Sequence record: PP885688.1
Length of the DNA: 64,000 nucleotides
Reading direction: 5' to 3' (one strand)
Below the pieces are notes generated by a model. It was not told the origin of the DNA, did not search any database, and saw only the letters and a list, made by a program, of their open reading frames with translations. Within the stretch, counting starts at the first letter, position 1. The number at the start of each line of letters is the position of its first letter. Below are positions 9,197-62,751 of this stretch, one piece after another. The translations under genes and the position numbers were made by a program.

Positions 9197-9899
9197 GCGT
9201 CGCGCACGGTTTGCTTTCGAGATGGACAAGAAGGTTACGGTCACCAACAAACGTAACCTGGCCCGTCTTGCCTCCCGCCAGGTCTACGATTCCCTCGCTT
9301 ACGCGCAACGGACCCTCCTCCGCCTGGAGGAATCGGTTCGTTGGATGGCCCACCTGAATCAGGTGGAAGAGCGCCTGCTCCGCATGGGCATTCTTGCGGA
9401 CAAGGACGGCGATCCCGAAGAGAAACGTCTTCGCGCCGCCGCCTTCGAGGCTCTTATGGTTGCCCGGAAGGCCGTCACCACACTCCGCGACCACAAGTCA
9501 GAGATCGCCACGCAGATGGAGGAGGACTTTGATCCGTTCCTCCGCTTATCTGGTCAGCCAAAGGTTGCCAAGAAGCCCGAACCGCCGAAGAAAGCGACAA
9601 CGTTGCAGGAGCAGATGCAACCGCTGGGCGATCCCGCGTCGAAGTGGCAGCCTAAGGCCCCTCCACCAGCTCCCGCCGCATCCAAACCCGCGCCGGTTCA
9701 GGTCAAGCCTGCGCCAGTACCCGCCCCCAAGGCTCCCGCAGCTGCCCCGGCACCTCCGGCCAAGCCCAACCCCATGAAGCTGAAGCTGAATAGTCTTCTT
9801 CTGGCCAAGGCTCGGGCCGAAATCACCGCCCGCGCTAAGGAGAATGCTGAAAACGAGCTATCAGGTCCCTCCTTAGGGACGGTAACTGATGGCAAATAG
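9189..9899 (+). CDS. Hypothetical protein (coiled coil plus Pro/Lys-rich linker)
   Basis: ATG overlaps polA stop; genome-like codon usage. Confidence 0.7.
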   Translation: MPERRARFAFEMDKKVTVTNKRNLARLASRQVYDSLAYAQRTLLRLEESVRWMAHLNQVEERLLRMGILADKDGDPEEKRLRAAAFEALMVARKAVTTLRDHKSEIATQMEEDFDPFLRLSGQPKVAKKPEPPKKATTLQEQMQPLGDPASKWQPKAPPPAPAASKPAPVQVKPAPVPAPKAPAAAPAPPAKPNPMKLKLNSLLLAKARAEITARAKENAENELSGPSLGTVTDGK

Positions 9900-12336: not shown

Positions 12337-12372
12337 ATGACTCTTCACCCGAAGCACGGGGAGGCCATATAG

Positions 12373-15162
12373 ATGGCCACAGTCCCCTTTCCTGGCGTAT
12401 GGTCCTCGAACACTCAGCTCACTGGTAACTCCGTCTTCGTCATCGACGGCAACGGAACCGTGTGGTTGATCGGAAACTCCACCGAGACAGGTGCGGCTCT
12501 CTTCTCCTCTCCTGCAGGCGCGACCAGCTTCACCCAGATCGTTGCGATTCCGAACGTTGAGAGTGCGGACCTGGCCTTCGATCCCGCGATTGCAATCGAC
12601 GCGGACGGAACTCTCCACTTCATCGGACAGACCCGTAGCAACGGGATCGTCACCCTGGTGAAGTTCGACTACAACCCAGCGACCTCCGTACTCTCCGGCC
12701 CCTTCACGGTCAACACCAACGGTTATGTCGGATCTGACTACGACATCGTCGCGCTGGCGAACGGAAACTGCTACGTCGCATCCTGCCTGATCACACCTTC
12801 GACCGAGACCATCTCCGGAATGGAGATCAACGCCGCCGGAGAGGTCCTCAACACCGACGTCCTGATCACTCAGCCTCTCGAAATCGGCAACCGCTATGGA
12901 TCCGTGTCGCTCTGGACACCAGACGGCGTCGCGGTCGAGATCTATCTCTGCTTCGAGCCCAAGTCCTTCGTCTTCGCTGACTCCCTTGTATCGATCGCCC
13001 TCGCCATTCGCACCTCTGCGGGCAACGTCACCGCCCCCGCAGTTCTAACCACCATCTCAGCACGCTATGTAGCTGGTCGGCTGACGGTGCTGGGTAATCT
13101 CACCGAGCGTTACATCGCGCAGTGCTACTACACCCAGCTCCGTGGCCAGCTCGTCAGCAATCTGCTCGTCGGCCATCTCGCCCTCGGCGCTACTGCATGG
13201 GATTTCAAGGCGCTGACCGGCGCTGTCCAATCGTCCTACCTTGAGCCAACACTCTCTTTCTCCTCCGCTGGTCTGGTACTGGCGATCATCGGTGGGGATG
13301 CGAACAACTTCGCCAAGGGTGGGCCGGTGATGTTGTTCGACCTCAACCCCAACGGCTGGGTGCTGACCCCGCGTACCGACTTCCCGTATCCCGCGTTCGC
13401 GACCTGGCTGCGTGGTGCAAAGTCGATTCTGCCGGACGGCATGCCGTGGGGATTCCTCGCCCAGGACTCCGCAAGTGGCGTCGCCCGCTTCTACACCGGC
13501 TTCAATGCGCCACCGATCGCTGAGATCGAACCGACCACCGTGACGGCACAACGCAATGTCGTCTATGAGTTCGACGCCAGCGACAGCTCCGACATCAACC
13601 TCGACATTCTGAGCTTCGCCTGGAGCCTCAACGATCCGACCGGCAAAGCAGTCTTCCTTCCAGATGGAGAGACCGCGAGCGTCATGCTGCCCGCATCAAT
13701 CGGCCCTGCTGCTGAGACGGTCACCCTTACGGTGTCCGTCACCGACGTCACCGCCGACGGTGCACCGCTCCACGCCATCCCATCGACCGCTGTCGCCACG
13801 CTGACCTACCCCTTCATCCCCGCGCCTCAGATCGCAAGCCCCGGTATCCTTCAGGCAGCGCGTAACAGTCAGCTCCGTATCTCCCCGGTGATCACGCTCA
13901 GCCCGTTTGTGAGCGCCACCTACGCGTGGACCCAGACCGGCGGTACCCCAGTCGAGTTTCTCTCCTCAGCCGACTTCTCCAGTCTGCTCATCCAGACCAA
14001 TGGAGCCGCGATCGGTGGGGAAGCTCTCCTGTTCAAGATCACCGTCAACGACGGCATCAACGTACCGGTCTCTTCGACGATCGAAGTGCATGTGGCCGCT
14101 CGTCCCGCAACTGGCGAGACCGACACGCTCGCGCGTTCCACATACTCTGGCAACATCTCGCAGCGCAACACGCCGAAGACCTGGTCCGACCCTGTGGCCT
14201 CGACGACCATCACCAACTTCATCGAGACCAAGCGTGCCCCTCTGACACCCACGGTGGACGAGAACGGTGTGATGACCGTCGACCAGCTCGGCAGCTACAT
14301 CATGATCGGACCGGAGGCGGTGCTCGTTCAGCGCCGAGGTGTCAGCTACCACACCCTCACGCCCGATCCGACGAAGACGATCCTCGACGCGGAGCACTCC
14401 TTCCTCGACGAGACCATCCTGCTCACCAGTGACGGCTTGCTTCTGCAGATCTTCCCGAACGCGGCGCACACCGACACCGACAATGCTGCGGCGACGATCG
14501 ACATCTCCAACATCATCGACTCACCCTTCATCCGCGTGTCAGCGACGCCTCCGTTCATGGGAGAGCGCGTACTCTTTCTGTCCGGCACCTCTGGTGTCCT
14601 CCTGCTACAGGTGGACGGAACCTTCGATGTGACCGGCAGCCTCTTCCTCTCCTCGAACGGTGAGCATCTCTACGGAGCCTCTGACGTGCAGTGGGTCAAG
14701 TCGACCGGCGTTGAAGATCTTCACTCCGGTGTGCTGCTGATTGGTACGCTTGACTCTCAGGGTCACAGCTTCGAGACGGAGTTCCAGCTGTCGAACCGCT
14801 CTGTCACAGCAACGTGGGATGCCTCCAAGCTGCGCAACCAGACCGTCACCACCGGCGAGCTGCTCTTCGATCCGCTCGATGGGTACTCTGGCCTGCCGAT
14901 GCCTCCCGTGCTTGGTCTCCCGGTCCTGTCCAAGGGATCCATCCAGCTGTCATGGACGCAGGACCGCCTGGATCTGGTCTCCGGCTACTCCGTACTTCTG
15001 ACGACCAACGACTTCACCAGCACTCTGGTAAGTATCGGCTCCGGCGACATCACCACGATCTCGGTGACTCTGCCGACGGGTGCGAACTACGTCTTTGAGA
15101 TCGTGGCGCACTCGCTCGACGGTGATTCTGGCCGATCGAACCCCGCCTCGATAACAATCTGA
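12373..15162 (+). CDS. Virion-associated beta-rich protein (propeller-like, PKD/Ig-like and FN3 domains)
   Basis: FDASDSSD...FAWS and YAWTQTGG...FKITVNDG PKD-like motifs; C-terminal FN3-like LSW...GYSV...YVFEIVA. Confidence 0.6.
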   Translation: MATVPFPGVWSSNTQLTGNSVFVIDGNGTVWLIGNSTETGAALFSSPAGATSFTQIVAIPNVESADLAFDPAIAIDADGTLHFIGQTRSNGIVTLVKFDYNPATSVLSGPFTVNTNGYVGSDYDIVALANGNCYVASCLITPSTETISGMEINAAGEVLNTDVLITQPLEIGNRYGSVSLWTPDGVAVEIYLCFEPKSFVFADSLVSIALAIRTSAGNVTAPAVLTTISARYVAGRLTVLGNLTERYIAQCYYTQLRGQLVSNLLVGHLALGATAWDFKALTGAVQSSYLEPTLSFSSAGLVLAIIGGDANNFAKGGPVMLFDLNPNGWVLTPRTDFPYPAFATWLRGAKSILPDGMPWGFLAQDSASGVARFYTGFNAPPIAEIEPTTVTAQRNVVYEFDASDSSDINLDILSFAWSLNDPTGKAVFLPDGETASVMLPASIGPAAETVTLTVSVTDVTADGAPLHAIPSTAVATLTYPFIPAPQIASPGILQAARNSQLRISPVITLSPFVSATYAWTQTGGTPVEFLSSADFSSLLIQTNGAAIGGEALLFKITVNDGINVPVSSTIEVHVAARPATGETDTLARSTYSGNISQRNTPKTWSDPVASTTITNFIETKRAPLTPTVDENGVMTVDQLGSYIMIGPEAVLVQRRGVSYHTLTPDPTKTILDAEHSFLDETILLTSDGLLLQIFPNAAHTDTDNAAATIDISNIIDSPFIRVSATPPFMGERVLFLSGTSGVLLLQVDGTFDVTGSLFLSSNGEHLYGASDVQWVKSTGVEDLHSGVLLIGTLDSQGHSFETEFQLSNRSVTATWDASKLRNQTVTTGELLFDPLDGYSGLPMPPVLGLPVLSKGSIQLSWTQDRLDLVSGYSVLLTTNDFTSTLVSIGSGDITTISVTLPTGANYVFEIVAHSLDGDSGRSNPASITI

Positions 15163-21890: not shown

Positions 21891-22669
21891 TGGTATCGGG
21901 ATACGAGTTTTACAAGGGACCGTGGCAGGACACCGGCTGGCTGGTCAACGCGACGCATGCGTTCTTCACTGAGTATGCTCCGACGAAGAACATCTACGAG
22001 GTCACGAAGGAGAAGATCGTCGAGCGCCGCAAGTGGACTCCGACGCTGTCCTACTATGACACGCACTTCACCCAGATCCTCGAAGAGCTCGGCATCATCT
22101 ACGTCCCCAAGCAGGTGGACCCAGGTCCCGGCGTGCTCTTCCCGATCCCTGACTATCACCAGCGCCTGACCCATGGCAAGATCAACCCCTTCTATGAGCT
22201 GCTCCTCCGCGACCAGCCCGCTAAGTATGGATTCCTAGGCAAGAAAGATGCCTTCCGAGGACCGTCGTGGATGGGCGCGACCGATGAGGTCCTCCGGCTG
22301 ATCGCACGCTACCGTACAGTCATTCTGGTTGAAGGTCCGTATGATCTTCTCGCCTGCCGCCTGCTGTGGCCGAACGCTGCGGTGCTCTCGACCGGCACCA
22401 AGACCATCAACGATATGCATGTGGCGTATCTGCGCATGCTGGGCGTCAAGACGGTCTATCTCCTGTTCGACTATGAGTCTGCGAAGGCTGGTAAGTCCGA
22501 TGGTCAGGGACAGATCGCGATGGAGATCATCCGCAACACCTATGGCCGCACCTCAGGCCTGCGATTCGAGATCGCGAACTGCCCGAACGACGACCCCGCG
22601 ATGTGTCTCGAAGACTACTGGGGCGCTCAGGCTCTGCGCAAAGTTCTCGTAGGAATCTTTCCTCAATAA
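21890..22669 (+). CDS. DnaG-type primase catalytic/TOPRIM domain lacking the zinc-binding domain
   Basis: LFPIPD...KYG, VILVEGPYD, VYLLFDYE TOPRIM motifs. Confidence 0.75.
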   Translation: MVSGYEFYKGPWQDTGWLVNATHAFFTEYAPTKNIYEVTKEKIVERRKWTPTLSYYDTHFTQILEELGIIYVPKQVDPGPGVLFPIPDYHQRLTHGKINPFYELLLRDQPAKYGFLGKKDAFRGPSWMGATDEVLRLIARYRTVILVEGPYDLLACRLLWPNAAVLSTGTKTINDMHVAYLRMLGVKTVYLLFDYESAKAGKSDGQGQIAMEIIRNTYGRTSGLRFEIANCPNDDPAMCLEDYWGAQALRKVLVGIFPQ

Positions 22670-22699
22670 TCCCGGTCGGGCCTGTCGGATGGGTATTAG
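22667..22699 (+). promoter_or_regulatory. Class 1 promoter (TAAT-N20-GGGTATTAG)
   Basis: Motif match; upstream TAAT uses the primase stop codon. Confidence 0.8.
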
Positions 22700-22743
22700 C
22701 TCATGGGGACGCCAAGCGAAACCCCTTGAGAGGAACCTCCTAC

Positions 22744-24141
22744 ATGTTTGGACGTGCAAACTGGGCCATCATCGGTCTGAAGACTGAGTCGCTGCCGAAG
22801 TTCAAAGGCAGCCTCGACACCATCGAACTCATGCTGGCTCATTCGCAGCTGGCCGCAGCAGCAATCACCCGTTTCCTCAATCACGATTCTGTCGGAATCA
22901 ACCCGTTCGGCGCTCCCCGTCTCGACGAAGAGCACGGCATCTCTGACGCCCTCGCCTCCGATCTGATGGGCTACGCGACCGCGACGCCGGAAGAGAAGAA
23001 AGACCGTGGCGTCTCCCCCGAGCTGCAGGACCACGAGGGCTTCGGCTTCGGTCCCGATGCATTCTCACTCGATAGCTCGGCCACCCGCTTCGGCTTCTGG
23101 GTCGTCATCAACAGTTACAAGGATGTCAGCCACGTCGCCTCCATCAAGGAGCAGACGGCCAACACATCGTTCCAGCGTCCGTACAAGTTCCTCGCACCGA
23201 CCGACAAGAAGCAGGTCGATGCGGATACCCGTCCCGTCACCGCCGCCATCCGCAAGCAGTTCCCGGTCCTGATCGATTACCTCGAAGGCCGCATCTACAT
23301 CCAGTCCACCGCGAAGGCTGACATTCTGTCCGTGCAGGACGTCCTCGCCGACCTGGGCGCTGAGATTACAAGCCTCGCATGGAAGTTTGAAGTGGAAGGT
23401 CACTGGCCCTCGAAGGTTCTGAGCAAGCTTTACAGCGAGACGCTCCACAAGGACGCGTTCAAGGCTCGCGCCGAAGAGGCTCAGCGTTTCCGTGCCTCCG
23501 AGATCGAGAAGCTGGAGAACTCTGAGCTACAGAGCCTGGTCACGAAGTACTTCTCGACGACCGAGCTCGGTGGGGACAAGTTTGCGAACCTCGCGGCCCC
23601 TGCAGCGATTACGCTCCACGCAACCAGCCCAGCCATCGTGGTACAGAGCCCAACCACCGCCACCGACCTGCTCGGCCTGACCGATGACGCCGGTGTCTTC
23701 GCCGCCTCGGTCACCCTTCAGGAACGGATCACCATCACGAAGAAGTCCGGTGAAGAGCGTACCTTCCGCAAGGATCTGGTCAGCTTCGAGATCAACGATG
23801 GACTGAACCTCGTCGACGTTGGCGCGGCTCTTCTGCGTGGCTTCGATCTGCCGACCTTCAAGAAGGATATCCAGCGCGACATCAAGCAGACCAAGCGCGT
23901 TCCTCAGCTCTCTGAGTTCTGGACGCAGTGGTTGATCGATATGGCCACTGGTGTCCGCACGATCGAGTCTGAGATTGCTGAGATTCTCGGCATCAAGGAC
24001 GAAGACTACGGCATCCAGCCGATGAGCTTCGACGGCGGCAGTGACGGCGTCATCGAGGTCGTTGAGAATCCGTTCAAGAAGCTGCAGGAGATGGGCGTCA
24101 CCGTAACCCTGACGCAGGGTATCAGTGAGGTCGGTGAGTGA
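22744..24141 (+). CDS. Hypothetical protein, weak RdgC-like segment
   Basis: KQFPVLIDYLEGRIYIQSTAKADI resembles RdgC WIDxxNGLIxVD; resemblance only. Confidence 0.35.
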   Translation: MFGRANWAIIGLKTESLPKFKGSLDTIELMLAHSQLAAAAITRFLNHDSVGINPFGAPRLDEEHGISDALASDLMGYATATPEEKKDRGVSPELQDHEGFGFGPDAFSLDSSATRFGFWVVINSYKDVSHVASIKEQTANTSFQRPYKFLAPTDKKQVDADTRPVTAAIRKQFPVLIDYLEGRIYIQSTAKADILSVQDVLADLGAEITSLAWKFEVEGHWPSKVLSKLYSETLHKDAFKARAEEAQRFRASEIEKLENSELQSLVTKYFSTTELGGDKFANLAAPAAITLHATSPAIVVQSPTTATDLLGLTDDAGVFAASVTLQERITITKKSGEERTFRKDLVSFEINDGLNLVDVGAALLRGFDLPTFKKDIQRDIKQTKRVPQLSEFWTQWLIDMATGVRTIESEIAEILGIKDEDYGIQPMSFDGGSDGVIEVVENPFKKLQEMGVTVTLTQGISEVGE

Positions 24142-25259
24142 GCATGATCGCCGTCCGGCCTAAGCGCTGGCATGAGGTGATCGGGCAAGACCGGGTAGTG
24201 CGTGTGCTGCACGCGCTACTCCGGATGCCCCAGTTCATGACGCGCGGAATGATCTTTGAAGGACCCTACGCCGTCGGTAAGACGTCGTGTGCGTACATGT
24301 TTTCGAAGGCGCTGATGTGCCTCGATGACAAGCAGCCACTCGGTTGCGGTGTTTGCCCGTCCTGCATCACCGATCTGGACGAGCACAACTCCTTCATGGA
24401 GGTGGATGCTGCGTCGCACTCCGGCGTTGAGCAGGCTCGTGCGCTGATGGCTCGTCTCGATGGACCCTCGAACCTCGGCAAGCGCCACGTGGTGCTCATT
24501 GACGAGGCCCACAGGCTCTCAGTCCAGGCATGGGACATCTTCCTCAAGCCGCTGGAGCTCGGTGACACCTCGGTGGTCTTCCTGTTCGCTACGACCGACC
24601 TCAATGAGATCCCACTGACCATTCAGTCCCGCTGCGCCAAGCTGCGCTTCGGTGCGGTCGATACAGACGATCTCGTGGGGATGCTCACCGCAGTTGCAGA
24701 CGGCAAGCGCATCGCCTACACCAACGACGGTCTGCGTGCAGTAGCAGAGTCAGCCAATGGCCGCCCCCGGGATGCCGTCCTTTCGCTTGCACTCGTTGCT
24801 GCGACCGGAGAAGTCACCCGTGAGAACGCCGAGGCTGCGCTCAACCAGGACGCCAGCTCGATCGCGGCCCAGGTCTTTGTCGCCATCATGGAAGGCAAAG
24901 TCGCTGAAGCTGCGCAGACTGCCGACCGCCTGGCGCAACGCATTGGTCCGGTCAAGGTGATCGAGACTCTGTTCTCGCTCTATGCCCGCGATCTCTTTGA
25001 TGGAGCCAACGTCGCCGAGTACTTCGCTCCGTTGAAAGAGATGACCGCTTTCTTCCTGAAGTGGAACGCGGCCAGCCATCTCCCCGCCGATATCACCCCG
25101 CTCTTCACCATGGAGCTGAGTGAAATGCTGCGGGTCAACTACAAGCCTGTGATGCAGGTGACCGCATCGCCGTCCCAGCCCTCCCCTTCGGGCTCCTCGC
25201 AGACGCGGGGAACCACCGTAAACGAACACACCTTCAAAGAACTGCTCGGAGCACTCTAG
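24138..25259 (+). CDS. dnaX: DNA polymerase III gamma/tau-like clamp loader
   Basis: RPKRWHEVIGQ, GPYAVGKT, CGVCPSC, EVDAASHSGV, LIDEAHRLS, TIQSRC. Confidence 0.92.
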   Translation: MSMIAVRPKRWHEVIGQDRVVRVLHALLRMPQFMTRGMIFEGPYAVGKTSCAYMFSKALMCLDDKQPLGCGVCPSCITDLDEHNSFMEVDAASHSGVEQARALMARLDGPSNLGKRHVVLIDEAHRLSVQAWDIFLKPLELGDTSVVFLFATTDLNEIPLTIQSRCAKLRFGAVDTDDLVGMLTAVADGKRIAYTNDGLRAVAESANGRPRDAVLSLALVAATGEVTRENAEAALNQDASSIAAQVFVAIMEGKVAEAAQTADRLAQRIGPVKVIETLFSLYARDLFDGANVAEYFAPLKEMTAFFLKWNAASHLPADITPLFTMELSEMLRVNYKPVMQVTASPSQPSPSGSSQTRGTTVNEHTFKELLGAL

Positions 25260-26293
25260 TGATATTGACGTACGGCGACACTTCTTCTTTTGGCGATCTG
25301 CAGTGGTATATGGTCGAGCTCCGTTCGGAGCGCACAGTTGAATCCACGCTTCGCCGCCTTGGTCAAACCCTGCAGAAGATCTTCCGCGACACAGCGGTCG
25401 AACTCTTTCTGCCGATCCAGATTCGTGATCTGCACAACTTCGAGCTGAGCACAGGGAACTACATCTTTGCCCGCTCGCCCCAGTTTTCCCGCTTGCTTGC
25501 CATGCGTGCCGTGACCGGCGTCGTCGGTCTGGTGTGCGAGGGCGATATCAAGCACGCCTCCAAGGTCATCCCGGTCGATCACGAGTTCGTGAAGAAGATC
25601 ATCGACCAGGCTGAACTCGAATTCCTCGACCGCGCCAAGGATATCGACGTTGGCAGCTTCGTCCGCATCATCGACGGCGAGATGCGCGACTGGTGCGGCA
25701 CGGTCACCGAGATTCACGACGGTGTGGCAGCGGTCAAGGTGGAGATCAAGACCAAGACCATGCTGATCGAGACTCCCGTACGCAACCTGCTCGACAAGAG
25801 CTTTGTCCCGGCCTCCCTGCGTGTCTTCTATTACGGCGAGCTGGTGGAGGGTCTCGAGACTCTGGGCCTTGCTCATCTCCTTGCGGAGGATCTGCACTTC
25901 ACTCCTGACGTGGAGTCTGCGGATGATGGCCTCGAAGCACCGGCACCCGCCAAGCATGGCCGCCAGCAGACTGTGACGGCCCTGGTGAAGCGTCTGATCG
26001 TCACCGGAACCCTTGACCCCAACGTGATCGGTCGCGCGGTCCTGGAGGCTCTGATGGCAGGAGCGCTCAAGGCTCCGAAGAATCTCTCGATCGTGCACGG
26101 GATCATCAAGAACCGCATGATCGAAGACCACTTCAAGGCGATCGACCCCACCATCGAGAACTATCGCGATGTGGTGGAGCGATTCGGTCAGGCCTACAAG
26201 TTCTCTCTTCAGGATCTGGTCAAGTTGGACCCCGGCACCGGGATTCCACTGACGACCGAAGAAGACGACACCCAGGAGGTCACGCATGAGTGA
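25259..26293 (+). CDS. NusG-family transcription factor (NGN plus KOW) with C-terminal extension
   Basis: WYMV start, GNYIFAR, VTGVVGLV, KOW DVGSFVRIIDGEMRDWCGTVTEI. Confidence 0.8.
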   Translation: MILTYGDTSSFGDLQWYMVELRSERTVESTLRRLGQTLQKIFRDTAVELFLPIQIRDLHNFELSTGNYIFARSPQFSRLLAMRAVTGVVGLVCEGDIKHASKVIPVDHEFVKKIIDQAELEFLDRAKDIDVGSFVRIIDGEMRDWCGTVTEIHDGVAAVKVEIKTKTMLIETPVRNLLDKSFVPASLRVFYYGELVEGLETLGLAHLLAEDLHFTPDVESADDGLEAPAPAKHGRQQTVTALVKRLIVTGTLDPNVIGRAVLEALMAGALKAPKNLSIVHGIIKNRMIEDHFKAIDPTIENYRDVVERFGQAYKFSLQDLVKLDPGTGIPLTTEEDDTQEVTHE

Positions 26294-27323
26294 CACAACC
26301 ACCCCCGCAGTACCGGCAACAGAACCGGCAACGACCGCACCCGCTGCATCCACGACACCCGCTCCAGTCGTGGCTGCGGCGGCTCCGGCCAAACCGGCAC
26401 CCACTACCTTCGGCCAGTACCTGAAGGACAACATCCCGAATCACCTCAAGCTGCTCTTCATTGTCGGCATCATTGCAGCCTGCGTCTATGGCTACAACAA
26501 GATCAAGGACCTCGAAGCGCAGTTGAAGGACTCGCAGCAGGTCACCGCGACGCTCAACCAGAAGTTCCAGACGGTTGGGACAGCGGCGATCTCCGGAAAT
26601 GCGACGACCACGCAGAACGGCGTGAACTCGCAGGCCTCTGATGCGTTCGGGAGTGCACTCGTCGGCATGATGCAGCAGCAGGGAAGTCAGATCAACTCGC
26701 TCACCAACGCGATCGGGATGACGAACTCCGCTGTGACCGCACTCGCGACGCAGCAGGCCGCCTTCACGCCCGCACAACAGAACGTGACGACTGGCAGGCT
26801 GACGGCCTATCCGATGGATGAATCGCGCGTCGGTGCGCCACCTCTGTCTACGGTGAACCTCTTCTACGATCCCACGCAGCATGATCCGACGAAGGCCTTC
26901 GCGGGAACCAGCTGGACTCACAACCAGGAACAGTTCACCACGTCGGTCGGCGAGTGGTCGAAGAACAAGAACGGCGGCCTCAGCACCACGATGAAGCTGA
27001 GCCGAACGATCTCGAAGCCGGACCCGGCGAACCCTGGCAAGTTGATCACGCTTGGCACCGAGGAGATTCCGATCACCGGGTCGACCACGGTATACACCCC
27101 AGATGGAGTTCTCGCCGGTGCGCCAGTCACGGTACCTCGTTGGACTCTGGGGCTCGGACTCTCGAAGACGACCAGCACGAACGGCTCGAATTCACCCACT
27201 TCCGGCGTAGGCGTCTTTGGATCCATGGATTATAGGGTCACCGATCGCTATGGGTTGTTCATCGGTACCGCAAATAACGGGCTTCTGGGCGGAATCAGCA
27301 TCCGCCTCGACAGTAGTAAGTGA
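26286..27323 (+). CDS. Membrane-anchored protein with coiled coil and amphipathic beta C-terminus (spanin-like candidate)
   Basis: TM LLFIVGIIAACVYGY, coiled coil, C-terminal alternating strands RWTLGLGL...SMDYRV...GGISIRL. Confidence 0.4.
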   Translation: MSDTTTPAVPATEPATTAPAASTTPAPVVAAAAPAKPAPTTFGQYLKDNIPNHLKLLFIVGIIAACVYGYNKIKDLEAQLKDSQQVTATLNQKFQTVGTAAISGNATTTQNGVNSQASDAFGSALVGMMQQQGSQINSLTNAIGMTNSAVTALATQQAAFTPAQQNVTTGRLTAYPMDESRVGAPPLSTVNLFYDPTQHDPTKAFAGTSWTHNQEQFTTSVGEWSKNKNGGLSTTMKLSRTISKPDPANPGKLITLGTEEIPITGSTTVYTPDGVLAGAPVTVPRWTLGLGLSKTTSTNGSNSPTSGVGVFGSMDYRVTDRYGLFIGTANNGLLGGISIRLDSSK

Positions 27324-27330
27324 GGGGAAT

Positions 27331-28008
27331 ATGAAAGTTTCACGGAGCGCAATCCACCGTCTCGAAGTTGACGTGACCTGTGGATGCAAAGCACACGGAG
27401 AGTACGAGGACGAGGCCTGCAAGAAGCAGAAGGGCACGACCGCGTTCACCCCATGCGAGAAACACAAGGAAGCACCGGGCATCGACATGTTGGAGATGAT
27501 GCTCACCGAGGTCGTCGACAAAGAGGCCCGCGAGCTGGTCATCGCTCCACCGGAGCCGACGGTCCATCCACGGACGCTTGCTCTCAAGCAGGCCGCCGAG
27601 GCTGGCGCTGAAGGTGGTGAGGCCGCAACCGGGGCACCGGCACGGACTCTACGCACCACCGGCAGCACCGGAGCTGTTCGTTCGGCAGCAGCACCAGCCC
27701 GCAGCGCACCGGGTTCTCACCGGCCAGCTGGTGGCGGCGGTGGCGGCTCAAGCCCCTTTCGTCGCTCGGATCCGGGATCGCGTCTTAGCCCGGCTGCAGC
27801 TCGTCTCGCCGGTGGATCGAAGGTAGCCTCCTCAACCAGGGTGGCGGGCGGGAACGCGAATCCCTCCGGCATCTCGTTCGGAGGAGATCTCGACATCGAT
27901 ATGGACGAGGTTCCGGAAGACAGCCGCGTAACTCGTTTGCTTGAAGTGACTAACGCTCTCGGTGACGAGGATGAGGGTGACTTCGACGACGGCGACATCG
28001 AACTGTGA
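27331..28008 (+). CDS. Hypothetical protein: Cys/His N-terminal domain plus disordered tail
   Basis: CGCKAH...C...CEKH; GAGGGG SD before ATG 27331. Confidence 0.65.
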   Translation: MKVSRSAIHRLEVDVTCGCKAHGEYEDEACKKQKGTTAFTPCEKHKEAPGIDMLEMMLTEVVDKEARELVIAPPEPTVHPRTLALKQAAEAGAEGGEAATGAPARTLRTTGSTGAVRSAAAPARSAPGSHRPAGGGGGGSSPFRRSDPGSRLSPAAARLAGGSKVASSTRVAGGNANPSGISFGGDLDIDMDEVPEDSRVTRLLEVTNALGDEDEGDFDDGDIEL

Positions 28009-28054
28009 CGCTTTGCTGGACCGCGACTATCCCTCCAACTTTTAGGGGACATCG

Positions 28055-28900
28055 ATGGGTCTGAAGGCAGTCACAATCACACAGCCAAACCCGAGTGGGG
28101 CCTTCGTCGAAGGCCTCACCGATACCGTTGTCATCGGTACAGGAGCTGCTGACGCGGGTAAGGTCGTCATCACTGGCGCAGACGGCAAGATCGATCCTTC
28201 GCTTTACGTGAGTGGAGGCGGGGGCGATGCGACTCTACCGATCCCGGCGACGGAAGTGTCCTACGACAACACTCTCTTCCCGACTGTCGAAGCCGCTTTG
28301 AACTTCCTGCTCTACGTCGGCCTCCAGATCGCACAGTTCGTCGCAGATCCGTCCGTGGCCGAGATCGGTAGTGCCGTCAGTGATGTTGGGTTGAGCTGGG
28401 TCTACAACAAGCCAGTCGTCAGCGAGCAGGTGGTAATCAATGGCGACATCACTGTCACTGTGGTACCAGATCAGCGAGCCATTTCATACGACAGCAATCC
28501 CCCAGGCTTCGAAGTCAACCAGGATTTCGTCCTGACCGCGTCCGACGGGACCGAGACTCAGACCGCAACCTGCCAGCTGGTGTTCCTGCCCAAAGCTTAC
28601 TGGGGAATCGCAGCTGCGACGAATCTCTCGAACGACCAGATCCTCGCGCTTACGCAAGACTTCACCACAGCGATCAACAAGACGATCGTCTATGACGCCA
28701 CCGGGGGTGGATTCCCGTGCTACTGCTACCCAGCGTCCTTCGGTAAGCCAAGCCTCGTGGTCGTCAGCGGACTTCAGTTCTCGGCCTACACGGTGAACAC
28801 CCAGGTCGTCACCAACGCCTCTGGTTTTAGCCAGTCCTACTTCGTCATCTTCTTCAATAACCCTCAGAACGGAAGCAACATTACAGTGACCTGGTCGTGA
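28055..28900 (+). CDS. Putative virion structural protein
   Basis: Beta-rich, directly upstream of fibre gene. Confidence 0.55.
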
Positions 28901-28904
28901 TCCC

Positions 28905-31900
28905 ATGAGCCTAATCCCCGGAACAAATATCGCCGCTGCGGTCGTACCGTTCGACACCCTCGACACCTACCCCACGCACGACTCCGCGTATGGAATCGGT
29001 GGCTGGCGTGAGGTCCAGAATCTCGCCGCACGTGATGCGATCCCGACGGCCCGGTTGCGCAATGGCATGGTTGTGTTCGTGCAGGGAGATCAGCCCTACC
29101 TCTACAGCGACAACACATGGGGACCGCTCGGCAGTCTCTTCAGCTCGACGCTGAACTACCGTGGCGTTTGGAACGCTGGTAGCAGCTACCTCAAGAACGA
29201 TCTCGTCACCCTCGCAGGTACGGCTTACATTGCGATCAACCCATCGACAGACGACAGCCCCACTGCGGGCGATGGAAACTGGAGTGTGTTCCTCCCCGGC
29301 GGTCCGGGATTCACCTTCCGGGGAGCGTGGTCGGAGTCGACCGCATATGTGCCGAACGATGTCGTGACCTATAACGGCGTGGTCTACATCTCCACGGGGT
29401 CATTCACCGGTAAAGAGCCGGACCTTCCCCCGAACGACTGGGAGGTCTTCGTCCCCGCAGCGCCCGGCTTCATCTACAAGGGTCCGTATCAGGATGGCAA
29501 AGCCTACGTTCCCAACGATGTCTTCACGGTCGCAGGCAGCGCGTTCCTCGTGCTTGCCGCGTTCACGCCTCAGGCCGGAGATCCCGTACCGAATCCTAGT
29601 GTCAGCAATCCCGATTACACCGTGTTCGCGATTGCGGGCGCGACCGGCGCAGTGGGACCTCAGGGACCTGGCGGCGCAACCGGAGCCACCGGCGCAACGG
29701 GAGCCGACGGGGCTGGACTCGCCTTCAAAGGCTTCTGGGCAAACTCAACAGCGTACAAAGCGCTGGACGTCGTGACGTTTCTGAACGCGATCTACATTGC
29801 TTCGACCGCGAGCACCGGGGTAGAGCCAGACACGAACCCGGGAACCTGGACGCTGAGCGTGGGACCTGGAGCCACCGGCGCAACGGGATCTCAGGGGCAG
29901 GCTGGAACAAATGGAGCCACAGGAGCCACGGGCGCTACGGGTGCTACAGGCCCCACCGGCCCGACCGGCGCATCGGGCACCAATGGTACGTCCGGCACCA
30001 ACGGAAAAGACTTCAACTTCGCGGGCTTCTGGAACAACTCCGTCGCCTATAAGCTTCAGGACTGCACGATCTTCAATAACAGCATCTACATCGCGACCGC
30101 AGCTGTGGCCGCTGGTGGCGCAACGCCCGACAGCAACAGCAGCTGGACGCTCATGCTGCAGGGACTAGAGACTCCGGGCGGATTCACCTATCGCGGAGGT
30201 TACGCGGTCGGGTCCAACTACGCGATCGACGACGTCTTCACCTATCTCGGCCAGACCTACGTCGCGACCGCAGCTTTCGTAGCGGGAAGCGCTCCCCTAC
30301 CCGCCAACACCTCACTCTGGGCGGCAGCCGGAGCAACCGGTCCTATCGGCATCACCGGTCCGACAGGTCCAACCGGGAATACCGGACCCACAGGCATCAC
30401 AGGGCCAACTGGCCCCACAGGACCCACAGGCATTACCGGTCCTACTGGACCGTCTGGCGCATTCGGTCCCACCGGCCCAACTGGACCTTCCGGCACGAGC
30501 TTTACCTTCCTGCAGGCATGGGTCAACACGCACGCGTATGTCGTGAACAACGTCGTCTCGCGCAGCGGATCCTCGTATATCGCGCTCAAGGCGAACACCG
30601 GCGTCGATCCGATCACCAATGATGGCACCACGTGGTCCGTGATGGCTCAAGAAGGCACTTCCGGTTCTAATATGAACTGGCGTGCGGTGTGGAGTGCTTC
30701 GAGCAACTACGCCATCCTCGACGCGGTCTACTATCTCGGCAGCAGCTACATCTGCATCGCGACTGCTGTTGCTGGAGCCGCTGCGCCGAACGCGAACGGA
30801 ACGAGCTGGTCTCTGCTGAGTGCCGGTCCGCAGCTGGTCGGTGCGTGGAGTGCGTCGACCTCGTACATCTACTTCGACTTCGTCACGTTCAACAACGCGC
30901 TCTATGTCTGCACGTCGTTGGTCACCGGCGGCAATCCTCCGGATCAGAACACGACCAACTGGCAGCTAGTGACGCAGGGAACTGTCGGACCCACAGGCGC
31001 AACCGGACCTACGGGCGCGACCGGTGCCACGGGACCTACGGGATCTCAGGGACTCACCGGACCAACCGGCAACACTGGACTCACCGGCAACGTCGGCCCT
31101 ACGGGCCCCTTCGGACCTACCGGGCCCACGGGACCAACAGGACCGACCGGTCCCGCGAGCTTGATCTGGCTAGGTCCGTGGAATGCAGCCACCGCATACG
31201 TCACCAACGACATGGTGTCGGACGATGGATCGAGCTGGGTCGCGATCGCGGCGAGCACAAACATCGAACCGTCTTCCGCTGGTGGATCCGCTGTCTGGAA
31301 CCTCGTCTCTGCGCAGGGATCCGGACCAACCGGACCTACCGGCGCATCGGGTACTGCGGGAACGCCGGGGGCAACAGGCCCAACCGGACCAACAGGAGCC
31401 ACCGGCGCGACAGGACCAGCAGGAACCGCCGGGACGGCTGGAGCTTCGGGAACTGCGGGACACACTGGACCTACCGGCCCCACTGGTCTGACAGGACTCA
31501 CCGGAGCAACAGGACCAACGGGTCCAACCGGCGCGACTGGAGCTCAAGGGCCTCAGGGCGCACAAGGAAATGGTCAGGGATTCAACTTCCGTGGACCATG
31601 GGCAGCGTCGACGGTCTACAACCCATTCGATGTGCTCACCTTCGGCGGTCAGACCTACGAGGTCACGACTGAGTTCACCTCAGGTGCTACTTTCGCAGTG
31701 GATCCTGGCATGGCCTTGTGGGCTGCCATCGGTGCGACTGGCCCAGCGGGTCCAACCGGGCCTACGGGCGCGACGGGAGCCATCTACAACCCGCAGACTG
31801 CGTATGCGCAGCAGGTACAGTCCAATGCGCCTGTCACCTACGTTCGATTCGAGAACGGAGTCGTGACCGACAGCGAGGGCAACTTCGCTCCTGCCACCTC

Positions 31901-33314
31901 CGGCACCATTGATCTTACGCAGGCCGGACGTTACGGACTCGGCAACTGCCTCACGAACACCGGCGCTGGCTATATCACCATCCCCTATCCACTCTCGGCC
32001 AGCCCCAATACGTTCTCCGTCGAGTGCTGGTTCAACACGACCACCGTCGCACCGACCATAGCGAGCCCCGGCGGCCAGGGCATCATCATGGGCAACTTGC
32101 AAACCGCCGGAGCTGGAAGTGGCGGCGGAGTCTATGGCTGGGGCGTCACGATGAGCAACGGAGGTTTGCTCACGTTGCAGAGCTCCGTCAATGCCTCCTT
32201 TGACTGGACAGGCGTCACTACGACCAACGCGTATAACGACGGCAACTGGCATCACATGGTGGCAGTCTTCTCAGCGGCTGCGAACCTCTTCAGCCTGTAC
32301 GTCGATGGAGTCCTGGTCGGAAGCAAAGCCGCTGGATGGGCGACGAACACTCCCTTCGCCGAACCGACCGTCCCGATCTACGTCGGTTTCAACCCAATCA
32401 TCAACATTGTGAGCCCACACTTCATCGGACAGATCGATGAGGTTGCGATCTATCCCTTCGACGCTACCGCTCTGGTGGCGGCAGATTACGCTGCAGCTCC
32501 ACCCTTTGCTCCATCGCTCCACTTCCGGGGTGCGTGGTCGGCTACCGCGACGTATGGACCAACCGACGTCGCCACAGTGGGAAGCTCGTACTATCTTTCG
32601 ACAGAACCCTTCAACACCGGCAACAACCCGACCAGCGGTACCGGCTGGGTTCTCTTTATCCCGCAAGGAGCCACCGGCGCTACAGGTGCGACGGGAGCCA
32701 CTGGCCCTGGCTTCGCATGGCGTGCTGCGTGGTCGAACACTACCGCGTACAGCATCCGCGATGGCGTGGCCTTCAACAACAGCATGTACATTGCGGTGGC
32801 GGCCAGCACCGGCGTCACACCCGGTTCCGATGGTGGAGCAACATGGACGCTGGTCTCGACCGGCGCAATCGGACCGACCGGACCTCAGGGAGCAGCTGGC
32901 GTACCGGGCCCGTCCGGCAACATGGTCGCGCGTGGTGCAGTCACCGTCCACACGGCCACGACAGCGGTAGGCGGTATCGCCGTAGGCACGGTTGCTCTGG
33001 GTAAGACGTTCACGCTGATTCAGGTCTCAGTGACGAGCCCTGCACGTGTCGAGCTCTATGCGACCGCAGCGGCTCAGGCGGCGGATCAGGGACGTCAGCC
33101 GGGCACCTCTCCTGCAGCCGGTACCGCGCACGGCGTAATCGCGGATCTCCTGCTCAACTCCTCGGCGCAGTTCAACTGGAACATGTCTCCTCCGGCGCTT
33201 GGATCGAGCATGGAAGCCACACCGTCGGACAACATCACCTACGCGGTGACCAACTTAGATGTCACCAGCAGAAGCGTGCAAGTGATCTTCACGGTTCTTA
33301 CACAGGAGCAGTAA
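28905..33314 (+). CDS. Collagen-like tail fibre/adhesin with CBM5/12-like repeats and LamG domain
   Basis: Eight or so G-P-T/G-A-T triplet tracts alternating with W..(S/T)..Y...DVV.Y.G..Y modules; LamG motifs [29 protein letters not shown]. Confidence 0.85.
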
Positions 33315-33317
33315 ACA

Positions 33318-34175
33318 ATGGCCGTTTCGCAGAGCTTCGCCCTCGCCGACAACTCAACCCTCGCCAACTTCAAGGCATGGGCTCAGCTGATCTCGAACGC
33401 CTTCTCGGCCTTCGGCTGGGTCAAGAGCAGTGACACGGGTCAGGTGGTCTGGACTTCGATCGCGGCAACTCCCGCCGTGAGCACGTTCGTCTACGAGATC
33501 TGGACGATGAATGACTCGTTCTCTTCGACCGCACCTGTCTTCGTCAAGGTCGAGTACGGTACCGGAACCACCTCAACCTTCCCGAACATGGCGATCACCG
33601 TAGGCACCGGCTCTAATGGAGCAGGAGCACTCACCAATGCGGGGACTCGTACCCTCTGCGGACCCTTGAGCTCCGGCGGTATAGCGACCACATACGAGTG
33701 CGACTTCTCAGGCAACGCTGGACGCATCGCGTTCACGATGTGGCGCGGATACACGTCGCCCATGTTCTTCTCGATCGAACGCTCCCACGACGGGAGCGGC
33801 AACGATCTCGCGACCTATGTCACCTATCTAATTTCAGGGAACGCGGCGCTCACGCCCTTCTGCTATCAGCAGACCATCTTCCCCTCGGCCAACGGAGGCC
33901 CGCTCTTCTACGAGAAGTTCGGACTCACGCTGCAGACAGGGAATACCACCGCGACGTTTGCGAACTCGGTGGCTGTGTCACCCTTCTGGCCGTTTGTCGG
34001 CAAACTCGACAACCCGATGATGGGAGCGGTCTGCATCAAGGACGGGGACTTCTCGGACGGTGCTCAGTTCGGTGTCACGCTCTTCGGTGCGTCGCACAAC
34101 TACCTCGTAGTCAAGACGACTCTCGGCTCATGGGGGAATCAGACCACCAACGGTATCGCCATGAGGTACGAGTAA
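33318..34175 (+). CDS. Tandem paralogue 1 of fibre-associated family
   Basis: Shared motifs DTGQV.W, YEIW, ECDFSG, FFS.ERSHD, WP.VGK.DNP, MRYE. Confidence 0.75.
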   Translation: MAVSQSFALADNSTLANFKAWAQLISNAFSAFGWVKSSDTGQVVWTSIAATPAVSTFVYEIWTMNDSFSSTAPVFVKVEYGTGTTSTFPNMAITVGTGSNGAGALTNAGTRTLCGPLSSGGIATTYECDFSGNAGRIAFTMWRGYTSPMFFSIERSHDGSGNDLATYVTYLISGNAALTPFCYQQTIFPSANGGPLFYEKFGLTLQTGNTTATFANSVAVSPFWPFVGKLDNPMMGAVCIKDGDFSDGAQFGVTLFGASHNYLVVKTTLGSWGNQTTNGIAMRYE

Positions 34176-34177
34176 GC

Positions 34178-35023
34178 ATGGCTGTCATCCAGACCTACAC
34201 ACTACCGGACAACTCGACGCTCACCAACTTCAAGGCCTGGGCCCAGACGATCTCGAATGCGCTCGCGACCTTTGGCTGGACGCAGACGCCGGACACGGGC
34301 CAGGTCAACTGGAGCTCGATATCGGCGGTACCTGCGGCGTTCGTCTACGAGATTTGGAAGTCAGCGGACTCCTTCAGCTCCACCAACCCGATCTATCTAA
34401 AGCTGGAGTATGGCGCGGGCACAACTCCTTCGCTCGCGGTGACCGTAGGTTCAGGTTCCACCGGTGCAGGCCTGCTCACCAACGCGAGCCCACGCAATCC
34501 CCTTTCGATCAACGGTGCATCTGACAGCGCCACCCAGTCGTTCGAATGCGATCTCTCAGGATCCACCAGCCGTTTTGCATTCACGATGTGGCGCGGCATC
34601 GCTCTGCCCAGCTTCTTTTCGGTCGAGCGCTCGCGAGACGCGAACGGGAACGAGACGGCCAGTTACATCACGTATTTGTGTGCCGGGACCGGACTCGCGA
34701 CTCCCTTCTGCGCACAACAGTCGATCTATCCGGCGTCCAACGGTGGGCCGCTCTTTCAGGAGAACTTCGGCCTCACCTTCCAGACCACCAACACAACCAC
34801 AGTGACCGTAGGCAACCTGGTAGTAGCCGTACCCTTCTGGCCGCTCGTAGGCAAGCTGGACAATCCTCTCTTGGGGGCTGTGTGTCTCAAGGCAGCAGAT
34901 GTTGCCGATGGTCTGGTCTTCACGACCACGATTTATGGCGTAGCTCACACCTACATTGTGACGAAGTCCTCAGCTCTCTGGGGAGACGTCACCACCAACG
35001 CGATCGCGATGCGGTTCGAGTAA
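34178..35023 (+). CDS. Tandem paralogue 2
   Basis: Same motifs; true start MAVIQTY at 34178. Confidence 0.75.
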   Translation: MAVIQTYTLPDNSTLTNFKAWAQTISNALATFGWTQTPDTGQVNWSSISAVPAAFVYEIWKSADSFSSTNPIYLKLEYGAGTTPSLAVTVGSGSTGAGLLTNASPRNPLSINGASDSATQSFECDLSGSTSRFAFTMWRGIALPSFFSVERSRDANGNETASYITYLCAGTGLATPFCAQQSIYPASNGGPLFQENFGLTFQTTNTTTVTVGNLVVAVPFWPLVGKLDNPLLGAVCLKAADVADGLVFTTTIYGVAHTYIVTKSSALWGDVTTNAIAMRFE

Positions 35024-35033
35024 GGATACGACC

Positions 35034-35879
35034 ATGGCAGTGATTCAAACTTTTGCATTTGCTGACGGCTTGTCGATCGCAGACTTCAAGGCATGGGCAC
35101 AGGCGGTCTCGAATGCCTTCTCCACGTTCGGATGGGTACAGTCCTCGGATACCGGCCAGGTCAACTGGTCGACGATCTCTACGGTCCCGAGCACCTGTTA
35201 TGAGATCTGGCAGATGGGTGACGCCCTGCAGGCGACGAACCCAGTCTTCGTCAAGGTAACCTACGGGACCAGCAGTGGATCCTCCGCCGTACTTACTGTC
35301 TCGGTGGGATCCGCCTCAAACGGTTCCGGCACGCTGGGTAACGCAACTCCAACCATCAACTGTGGGCCAAGCACGGTAGCGGTGTCACAAGCGTGGGAGT
35401 GCGACTTCGCTGGCAGCACCAACCGGATCCATGTGTGTCTGTTTCGCGGTTCAACGACTGCGGCGTTCTTCTCGGTTGAGCGCTCCCATGATGCGAACGG
35501 AAACGACACTTCGGGATACGTCACGATCCTCGCAGGCGGTGACACCCTTGCCTCAGGGGTTCAGCAGACGGTAATGCCCTCCTCTCTAGGCGGCCCTCTC
35601 TTTCAGGAGCAGAACGGCCTGACCATGCAGACCACCAACACCAGCGGAACCTTCGCGTCTTCGACGGCAGTCGTTCCGTTCTACCCGATGGTTGGGAAGA
35701 TCGATAACCCTCTGCTTGGTGCGCTCTGCATTAAGAGGTCTGACTTCGCCGATGGCTCAGTCTTCTCCTCGACAATGTATGGAGCGAGCCATTCGTACCT
35801 CGTCATCAAGACGCTAGCCTCTGCTTGGGGCCGCAACGGCAGCTCTGGCAACAACGCCATCGCTATGAGGTTCGAGTAA
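35034..35879 (+). CDS. Tandem paralogue 3
   Basis: Same motifs; AAGGA SD. Confidence 0.75.
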   Translation: MAVIQTFAFADGLSIADFKAWAQAVSNAFSTFGWVQSSDTGQVNWSTISTVPSTCYEIWQMGDALQATNPVFVKVTYGTSSGSSAVLTVSVGSASNGSGTLGNATPTINCGPSTVAVSQAWECDFAGSTNRIHVCLFRGSTTAAFFSVERSHDANGNDTSGYVTILAGGDTLASGVQQTVMPSSLGGPLFQEQNGLTMQTTNTSGTFASSTAVVPFYPMVGKIDNPLLGALCIKRSDFADGSVFSSTMYGASHSYLVIKTLASAWGRNGSSGNNAIAMRFE

Positions 35880-36736
35880 TGGCAACCCTGCGATCCTACC
35901 TGCCGGTCGATCCCCAGGCCAGCTTCCCCGTCTTCCTCGCGTGGGCCGAGACGATCTCAGCTGCCTTCGCCTCGATGGGTTGGACCAGGACTTCGGACAC
36001 TGGGCAGGTGACCCTCTCTTCGCTGTCAGCTGTACCCTCGACCTACCCGTTCGAGATCTGGCAGGCCACTGATGCACTCGCCTCAACACTGCCGATTCTC
36101 ATCAAGATCGGATACGGGGCCTTCGCGCAGTTCGCCTCGATCACGATGCAGTTCGGCACCGGATCAAACGGCGCAGGCGTGCTCACAAACGCATCGCCGA
36201 TGTATACCTTCACCAACAACAACGGAGGTAGCGGCGGCAATCAGTTTCTGGAATGCTCATTCTCCGGATCGCCTGGACGCTTTACGTGTCTGATGTTCCG
36301 TAGCTGGGTTGGTGCGTTCGTGTTCTCGGTCGAGCGATCACATAACGCGAGCGGCGCGGACACGGCAGAGTACATCACCTACATTGCGGGTGGCGTCAAT
36401 CAGGGGATCAACCAGCAGTGTATCCTCCCGCCGCTTCAAGGAGGCGGTACGCCGGTCGAGAGCTCTATCGTGAGCGTTCACACCACCAATCCCTCTGGAG
36501 TCGTTCCTGGCGGTAACGCAAGCCTCTGCGCCTCCCCCGTCTGGCCGCTGGTGGGCCGACTGGGAAATCCGCTCATCAACGCCGTTGTCGTGAAGGCAGC
36601 CGACTTTGCCGATGGCACCGTTCTGCCGGTGTCGCTCTATGGCACAAGCCGAAACTATCTGGTGGCTAAGACGCTGATCGGTAGCGCGTCGATCACACGA
36701 GGAGGCGGGACGGCGCTTGCGCTGATCTACTCATAA
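35879..36736 (+). CDS. Tandem paralogue 4 (most divergent)
   Basis: Same motifs; TAATG coupling at 35879. Confidence 0.75.
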   Translation: MATLRSYLPVDPQASFPVFLAWAETISAAFASMGWTRTSDTGQVTLSSLSAVPSTYPFEIWQATDALASTLPILIKIGYGAFAQFASITMQFGTGSNGAGVLTNASPMYTFTNNNGGSGGNQFLECSFSGSPGRFTCLMFRSWVGAFVFSVERSHNASGADTAEYITYIAGGVNQGINQQCILPPLQGGGTPVESSIVSVHTTNPSGVVPGGNASLCASPVWPLVGRLGNPLINAVVVKAADFADGTVLPVSLYGTSRNYLVAKTLIGSASITRGGGTALALIYS

Positions 36737-36739
36737 CCC

Positions 36740-37057
36740 ATGGCCAACATCATCCAAAGCTACGTCGGTCCACTGCCGGTCATCTCGGTCACGGCCTATA
36801 ACGAGAACTCAGTCGCCGGGAACTTCACCCAGCTGGCTCCGGCGGTCCCCGTGTCGTCGATCAGCACCTTCGCGACCTCGGCACCAGGTGCAACCGAACT
36901 TCCGCTGGAGACCAACGCCTACTCTCCAGTCATCCAGGAGCTGATGCAGCCGCTGGTCACGCGTGCAGTCGCATCAGGCGGCGGCGCGGCGGGTACTGGA
37001 GGCGGCGGTCAACCACCGCCGACTACCGGCCAGCTGTTCCCACTAGGACGGAACTAG
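36740..37057 (+). CDS. Small putative structural protein
   Basis: Last ORF of the + strand operon; Gly/Pro-rich C-terminus. Confidence 0.6.
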   Translation: MANIIQSYVGPLPVISVTAYNENSVAGNFTQLAPAVPVSSISTFATSAPGATELPLETNAYSPVIQELMQPLVTRAVASGGGAAGTGGGGQPPPTTGQLFPLGRN

Positions 37058-45382: not shown

Positions 45383-45415
45383 TATCTCGGTAAGCAGGCC
45401 CTCCATGGGTATTAG
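45383..45415 (+). promoter_or_regulatory. Class 1 promoter (TATC-N20-GGGTATTAG)
   Basis: Motif match. Confidence 0.75.
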
Positions 45416-62696: not shown

Positions 62697-62751
62697 GGTG
62701 AGACCTCGTGCTGGAGGTCGGCTGCACCAAAACGCATCGGCCTCTCCATGG

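Follow-up and report, generated by a model that had tools for sequence, protein, structure and literature searches.

Among transcription factors, NusG/Spt5 is to our knowledge the only one shared by all cellular life, and its specialised paralogues RfaH, LoaP and UpxY are textbook examples of antitermination directed at particular operons. The literature searched places such paralogues on chromosomes and plasmids, not on phages; two reviews of the group leave phage-encoded members unmentioned (PMC7819879, PMC7593976), and a literature search found no publication characterising a phage-encoded NusG homologue. The gene analysed here, gp25, encodes a NusG-like protein and lies in a window of 64,000 nucleotides that corresponds to bases 1–64000 of the genome of Tunturiibacter phage Tunturi_5 (PP885688.1). 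Positions 24000–28000 match that record at 100% with identical coordinates, and the record rebuilt from its annotated pieces equals the window over 1–64000. Tunturi_5 is a jumbo myovirus of 308,711 bp from Finnish tundra soil whose host is the acidobacterium Tunturiibacter psychrotolerans (Acidobacteriota) (PMC11924767). The words "antiterminator" and "transcription" are absent from the paper describing the phage (PMC11924767), and the GenBank label of gp25 already reads "transcription antiterminator".

Its predicted structure places gp25 in the NusG/Spt5 superfamily, as a phage-encoded and strongly diverged member that combines an NGN domain with a KOW beta-barrel and with a helical C-terminal domain specific to its own family. 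A probability of roughly 0.5 is assigned to the proposal that gp25 acts as a phage-wide factor taking the place of NusG on the host RNA polymerase (RNAP), with the fibre genes downstream being served by a late-type promoter of their own. Tunturi_5 and its acidobacterial host are both cultured and thus provide a workable system for studying the refitting of an elongating polymerase by a phage.

Domain architecture of gp25

The gene and its three domains are located as follows:
25259–26293, plus strand: gp25, NusG/Spt5-superfamily protein of 344 amino acids (homologues, AlphaFold2 (AF2) model, structure matches)
25295–25618, plus strand: NGN domain, residues 13–120 (VIA-align and motif alignment)
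25640–25804, plus strand: KOW domain, residues 128–182 (predicted beta-barrel, Z 8.2, weak Pfam Spt5-KOW matches)
25814–26263, plus strand: family-specific C-terminal region, residues about 186–335 (AF2, profile scan)

The NusG-like open reading frame (ORF) singled out in the first-pass annotation is a real gene, for which 146 full-length homologues with 43–84% identity are recovered by a word search. The start of gp25 agrees with the starts of these homologues, and its GTG codon overlaps the stop codon of the clamp-loader gene by one base at the junction TAGTG. An antisense ORF at 25256–26434 (392 residues) was considered as the true gene and rejected, both the homologues and the fold favouring the plus-strand frame. 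When the 309-kb genome is scanned with TIGR00922, gp25 is the sole match (23.6 bits) and the only NusG-like gene there.

Pfam returns KOW matches only, to Spt5-KOW models at E about 0.03, while PHROG 6386, "transcription antiterminator", matches gp25 at E 0.002. The nusG model TIGR00922 scores 23.1 bits (E 5.5e-5) against a curated cut-off of 135.7, which leaves gp25 below the housekeeping NusG equivalog, and the UpxY model NF033644 similarly misses its threshold with 19.9 bits against 100. The RfaH model (TIGR01955) and the LoaP model give no gp25 match among the NCBIfam results at E ≤ 1. A profile built from 41 family members and compared with the PDB sequences yields 14 matches, all with poor E-values, 13 of which are NusG; in the same profile the NGN motifs GYVFV and V.GV.GFV align with NusG of T. 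maritima, and the KOW motif VR..DG....G.V aligns with the Aquifex and Thermus proteins.

The architecture is settled by structure rather than by sequence. The AF2 model of gp25 has a mean predicted local distance difference test score (pLDDT) of 87, and the approximately 30 best Foldseek matches in the PDB are all NusG, Spt5 or RfaH, the best with an E-value of 2.9e-8 and a probability of 1.00. The predicted NGN domain superposes with VIA-align on the NGN of RNAP-bound E. coli NusG (6c6u_N) with a Z-score of 9.4 and a root-mean-square deviation (rmsd) of 2.4 Å, covering 96 of 98 residues, and similarly on the NGN of RfaH (6c6t_D; Z 8.7) and of archaeal Spt5 (Z 8.6–8.7). Residues 128–182 are modelled in a single state as a KOW beta-barrel with pLDDT above 90, for which VIA-align gives Z 8.2 and an rmsd of 1.2 Å over 55 residues. 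The NGN domain is, as far as we know, found solely in NusG/Spt5 factors, and the order NGN-then-KOW is the hallmark of the NusG family. AF2, Foldseek and VIA-align together bear out the NGN and KOW domains, and beyond them the additional domain of about 150 residues, that had earlier been read from the sequence.

The C-terminal region opens with an acidic, partly disordered linker (residues about 186–233), which leads into a mildly basic helical core (residues 234–325; isoelectric point 9.4) predicted with pLDDT above 90. A HMMER profile restricted to this domain finds 75 proteins among 1.84 billion cluster representatives, nearly all of which are either fragments or proteins with an NGN-KOW part that is followed by the domain at about residues 188–340; the outliers, tetratricopeptide repeat (TPR) proteins with short repeated matches, were taken as spurious. 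The extra C-terminal domain is an orphan, confined to the gp25 family apart from these likely spurious repeat matches.

The gp25 family in soil jumbo phages

gp25 is a core gene of a soil jumbo phage clade. Its homologues derive from soil and peat metagenomes, mostly from huge-phage contigs, many of them 200–463 kb long, and all three domains are conserved across the family alignment. The phage sequence collection searched holds no gp25 relative besides the Tunturi_5 record itself. In public reads, 6% of the sampled words occur in one soil DNA run, and none in any RNA run.

Many larger relatives of 430–450 residues (P0048, P0059, P0068, P0088 and P0122) are extended, at about columns 440–500 of alignment A1, by a basic tail together with a zinc-ribbon-like segment rich in Cys and His, which Tunturi_5 lacks. 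One relative with such a tail is named "ribosomal protein L32" by the Joint Genome Institute (JGI). The Cys/His-rich tail is reminiscent, in resemblance only, of the zinc-ribbon protein Spt4, the partner of archaeal Spt5.

Comparison with known NusG proteins and phage antiterminators

Like housekeeping bacterial NusG (TIGR00922; 6c6u, 2lq8, 1m1g), gp25 has an NGN fold followed by a KOW fold, and its motifs can be aligned with those of NusG. It differs in scoring 23 bits where 135.7 are called for, in displaying an additional N-terminal strand and a long helix (residues 108–126) that joins NGN to KOW, in the added C-terminal domain of about 150 residues without known relative, and in being phage-encoded within a replisome module.

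The likeness to RfaH, LoaP and UpxY (PMC7819879, PMC7593976) lies in gp25 being a second NusG-family protein in a cell expected to own a NusG, and in its location on horizontally mobile DNA with long operons. By analogy with these proteins, gp25 may be expected to exclude NusG and to confer resistance to pausing and to Rho. In contrast to RfaH, whose model does not match gp25 at E ≤ 1, the KOW domain of gp25 is predicted, in the one state modelled, as a beta-barrel and not as an autoinhibiting helical hairpin, and no ops-like site is seen by eye in the class 1 leaders. UpxY is the first gene of its target operon, whereas gp25, at 19.9 bits against the 100 required by the UpxY model, is the third gene after a class 1 promoter. 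LoaP, whose model also fails to match, belongs to polyketide/antibiotic operons, while the context of gp25 is a phage replisome. Of the first-pass reading of gp25 as a specialised NusG, the identification of a phage NusG/Spt5 protein, for which a role in processivity or antitermination is natural, is supported, and the operon-specific targeting is not supported.

Other phages also carry NGN-KOW proteins (PHROG 6386; BFVD models F5B3X4, A0A6J5PZH6 and A0A6J5MAV8), six models of the BFVD matching gp25 at E ≤ 0.001 in a structure search. In contrast to gp25 these proteins comprise 146–241 residues, are devoid of the C-terminal domain and display 11–19% identity to it. The gp25 family is distinctive as a three-domain version fixed as a core gene of a soil jumbo phage clade. 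The classical phage devices that make the host RNAP resist pausing or termination, lambda N and Q, the HK022 put RNA and P23-45 gp39 (PMC3351154, PMC9378689), are unrelated folds or RNAs, and lambda N recruits the host NusG whereas gp25 is proposed to replace it.

The class 1 promoter and the gp23–gp27 unit

gp25 belongs to a tightly packed unit with the following elements:
22667–22699, plus strand: class 1 cassette heading gp23–gp27, formed by an ATAATC box, about 19 nucleotides (nt) and GGGTATTAG at 22691–22699
22744–24141, plus strand: gp23, with which the unit opens, an exonuclease recombination-associated protein according to GenBank
24144–25259, plus strand: gp24, clamp loader, DnaX-like AAA+ (PF13177 E 3.4e-21, PHROG 5846 E 6.9e-47)
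26286–28008, plus strand: gp26 and gp27 (tblastn synteny)

The class 1 consensus consists of ATAATC, about 19 nt and GGGTATTAS. The exact 9-mer occurs 10 times in the window, where 0.18 copies are expected, and 43 times in the genome, always in the direction of the downstream genes, with no copy in the reversed control; the promoter placed earlier at 22667 fits this strand-consistent cassette. The class 1 regulon, to which gp25 belongs, heads mainly replication and nucleotide-metabolism genes. The genes of the unit are tightly packed or overlapping in the annotation, and gp26 and gp27 have no match in Pfam, PHROG, NCBIfam or the Atlas.

The best-surviving alternative, although unlikely, is that gp25 is an operon-specific factor like RfaH, LoaP and UpxY, which would load after the class 1 site at 22691 and carry the transcript over 14 kb into the late fibre genes. 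This tight packing is what such a factor would be matched with, and so is the lack of any class 1 or class 2 motif between 22700 and 37057, a statement of the first-pass annotation that has been upheld; one-mismatch near-misses at 24117 and 34445 were rejected for want of the upstream partner box. The terminator count of the run can be read both ways. Intrinsic-terminator-like sites between 20000 and 39500 number 11 where 10.8 are expected, which is chance level, and the gene junctions fold no better than shuffled sequence; there is accordingly no terminator excess to interrupt a 14-kb transcript, and equally none for a dedicated factor to overcome. A further difficulty is that LoaP, TaA and UpxY sit at the head of an adjoining target operon (PMC7819879) and gp25 is third in its unit. 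An ops-like loading site after 22699 was looked for across the 43 class 1 leaders, aligned on the box and read by eye, in which no conserved element of that kind is seen, a loading site of other sequence being possible.

A late-type motif in front of the fibre cassette

Two further features lie downstream of gp27:
28025–28048, plus strand: promoter-like motif of class 3 (late type), in which 12 nt separate GACTAT from TAGGGG and whose end lies 6 nt ahead of the ATG of gp28
28055–37057, plus strand: fibre cassette gp28–gp34, comprising a tail-fibre protein, a collagen-like fibre, four paralogues and one small ORF

The run from 22667 to 37057 had been described as uninterrupted. It contains a single gap of more than 10 nt, at 28009–28054 between gp27 and gp28, and this gap is occupied by the class 3 motif. 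Class 3 was first seen as a recurring bipartite signal upstream of virion genes throughout the genome, after which a Gibbs sampler, which included the gp28 gap in its class 3 alignment, converged on GACTAY-N9-12-TAGRRG. The strict expression has 18 matches in the genome and 11 in reversed-sequence controls. Thirteen of the 18 immediately precede an annotated start and are correctly oriented, where about 3% of positions are estimated to qualify by chance, so that this placement is far beyond chance. The genes concerned, mostly tail, head and virion genes, are gp28, gp205, gp213, gp247, gp271, gp272, gp321, gp323, gp329, gp331, gp336, gp339 and gp343. The copies are located as follows:
147279–147302, 153689–153711 and 194350–194372 of PP885688.1, minus strand: class 3 copies
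223844, 224359, 261471, 266894, 276394, 277685, 282988, 290092 and 298449 of PP885688.1: class 3 copies
28025–28048 of the window: the class 3 copy before gp28

The second box of several copies ends 6–9 nt before the ATG, as in class 1, the distance to a start codon being 6–11 nt for several copies, and some copies come right after terminators made of a hairpin and a T-run. Because of this short, fairly regular spacing to the start codon and the position after terminators, class 3 behaves as a promoter and not as a pause site. For the same reasons class 3 was rejected as an ops-like loading site, several copies restarting transcription after terminators. As judged by motifs, Tunturi_5 carries three non-standard promoter classes.

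In the orthologous gp27/gp28 gaps of the relatives L051 and L052 the box CG(Y)GACTAYC is invariant, while the remaining gap sequence has diverged. These sequence comparisons suggest that the fibre genes are most likely transcribed from a late-type promoter of their own, located at 28025–28048. A separate late promoter ahead of the structural genes, which the first-pass annotation had named among the findings that would speak against its proposal, is therefore predicted in silico, and its placement 6 nt before the gp28 ATG, in the only gap of the run, argues against transcription being carried through by an operon-specific factor. That the gap contains no terminator is in favour of such a factor.

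The fibre cassette is recognised from PF01391, PF02839, PHROG 5073 (E 1.5e-166) and the paralogue repeats D3, D7, D10 and D11. Within it, gp29 (28905–33314) is a fibre of 1469 residues with collagen triple-helix repeats, visible as a 9-nt period in the DNA, and with three carbohydrate-binding modules of the CBM_5_12 type. Its homologues in L051 and L052 are fibres of 2138 and 2472 residues, respectively. At the end of the cassette gp34 (plus strand) and gp35 (minus strand) converge with an overlap of 35 nt at 37023–37057, where no terminator-like structure is found.

Gene order in related phages

The neighbourhood of the NusG-like gene was compared across 44 related loci, with the proteins of Tunturi_5 as tblastn queries. 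The general order upstream is sliding clamp, ATPase, gp21, primase, exonuclease, clamp loader and NusG-like gene, with primase, exonuclease and clamp loader ahead of the NusG-like gene in most of these loci, and a homologue of gp26 or gp27 is usually next downstream. The NusG-like gene overlaps or abuts the clamp-loader gene in Tunturi_5, L004 and L051.

A fibre cassette downstream of the NusG-like gene is restricted to the nearest relatives L051 and L052 (64–66% identity), where the order NusG-like gene, gp26, gp27, gp28 and giant fibre is retained, as an operon-specific factor would lead one to expect. In contrast, L004 (63% identity) displays after its NusG-like gene three small genes, one of them a gp27 homologue, and then a block matching gp36–gp49, and in 38 further loci no fibre gene occurs within 10 kb downstream. 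The class 1 promoters point the same way. In L002, L003 and L041, whose NusG-like gene has different neighbours, a class 1 motif lies 5 nt upstream of its own ATG, and in Tunturi_5, L004, L051 and L052 the motif precedes the exonuclease gene. Thus, the class 1 positions across the clade and the synteny place the gene in the class 1 replication-gene regulon and not in a fibre operon, and its position ahead of the fibre cassette is not what points to its function. The extension of middle transcripts into late fibre genes, as first proposed for gp25, is disfavoured by this restricted linkage together with the class 3 motif before gp28, and driving transcription on into the fibre genes is probably not what gp25 is for.

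In L051, a 307-kb relative, the NusG-like gene is separated from the gp26 homologue by a class 1 motif at 11050–11058, so that the unit is split differently from that of Tunturi_5.

Proposed role of gp25 and alternative explanations

The RNAP beta and beta-prime models (PF00562, PF04997) have no match in the 309-kb genome, while the controls are positive in 14 of 14 genomes, and two sigma factors, gp3 and gp211, are annotated in Tunturi_5. With no phage beta or beta-prime genes detected and sigma factors of its own, Tunturi_5 must rely on the host core enzyme, which is the expected partner of gp25; the same combination of host polymerase and phage sigma factors presumably holds for its relatives. 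In the proposed mechanism the NGN domain of gp25 would bind where NusG does, on the clamp helices of the host RNAP elongation complex, displacing host NusG. Transcription of phage DNA would become more processive and less prone to pausing and to NusG-assisted Rho termination, an effect that would span the phage genome rather than the operon of gp25 itself, and the KOW and orphan C-terminal domains might tether a further partner.

Several points weigh against this phage-wide replacement of NusG. All scores of the hidden Markov models (HMMs) are far under the family cut-offs (23 against 135.7 bits, 19.9 against 100), RNAP binding is proposed from the fold of gp25, and the late-promoter character of class 3 is deduced from motif position and conservation. 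The gp27/gp28 gap, lacking a terminator, would let class 1 read-through enter the fibre genes, and such read-through could benefit from gp25. In the KOW loop a T-K pair is invariant across the family, and the KOW domain may no longer bind S10 or Rho. The C-terminal domain finds nothing in the PDB by Foldseek at E ≤ 0.001 and nothing usable in the ESM Atlas, and its best score in a wide VIA search is Z 5.5, among scattered helical matches in the noise range for helical models.

A coupling of replication and transcription, in which the C-terminal domain would bind the sliding clamp gp9 or another replisome part and so tie RNAP to replicating DNA or resolve collisions between replisome and RNAP, appears improbable. 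In phage T4 the sliding clamp ties RNAP to replicating DNA through gp33 and gp55, a precedent to which the universal linkage of the NusG-like gene with sliding clamp, clamp loader and primase would correspond, as would the overlapping or abutting clamp-loader gene in Tunturi_5, L004 and L051. Support for coupling comes from gene order alone, and the alignments, read by eye, show no recognisable clamp-binding motif conserved at the C-terminus. A more elaborate version, in which the C-terminal domain links host RNAP to the phage clamp or replisome and replication licenses late transcription from the GACTAY-TAGRRG promoters, is a long shot; if true, the link would be a NusG-based counterpart of T4 gp45-gp33-gp55 and would explain the adjacency to the clamp-loader gene.

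No more probable than the simpler coupling is a host-takeover decoy, gp25 competing with host NusG or titrating S10/Rho and so chiefly deranging host expression. It would draw on the same fold evidence as the phage-wide replacement of NusG, on the membership of gp25 in the class 1 (replication-gene) promoter set and on the strong divergence from cellular NusG. The conservation of all three domains, the orphan one included, speaks instead for a built-in partner and not for simple competition, and there is no sign of toxicity.

Least probable of these explanations is that gp25 is no transcription factor and re-uses the NGN-KOW scaffold, for example for ribosome or RNA binding on the many leaderless messages implied by class 1 and class 3 sites 5–9 nt before an ATG, since ribosomal-protein KOW barrels do occur among the structural matches (Z about 7.4) but the NGN domain, which we know only from NusG/Spt5 factors, matches RNAP-bound NGN at 2.4 Å and is followed by KOW in the hallmark order.

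Other observations on transcription units and base composition

Some class 1 cassettes can form hairpins, in which the spacer before GGGTATTAS is complementary to the leader after it, with the box in the loop and a T-run following; these are found at 45392–45440 and 62720–62775 (minus strand) of the window and at 218480–218530 of PP885688.1, and may represent a terminator and a promoter in one. Elsewhere in the genome, too, promoter-less runs hold both replication and virion genes, at 68759–74270 of PP885688.1 (minus strand) and at 4925–15162 of the window. In the former the class 1 site at 74262–74270 (minus strand) heads a helicase gene, followed by genes annotated as tape measure and major head protein, and in the latter the portal and minor tail genes come after the gene for DNA polymerase.

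C-rich, G-poor RNA is the composition preferred by Rho. Over the whole window the GC skew tracks gene direction, with values of about −0.03 to −0.09 for plus-strand genes and +0.03 to +0.07 for minus-strand genes, and the sense strand holds more C than G, so that phage mRNAs are mildly C-rich and G-poor.

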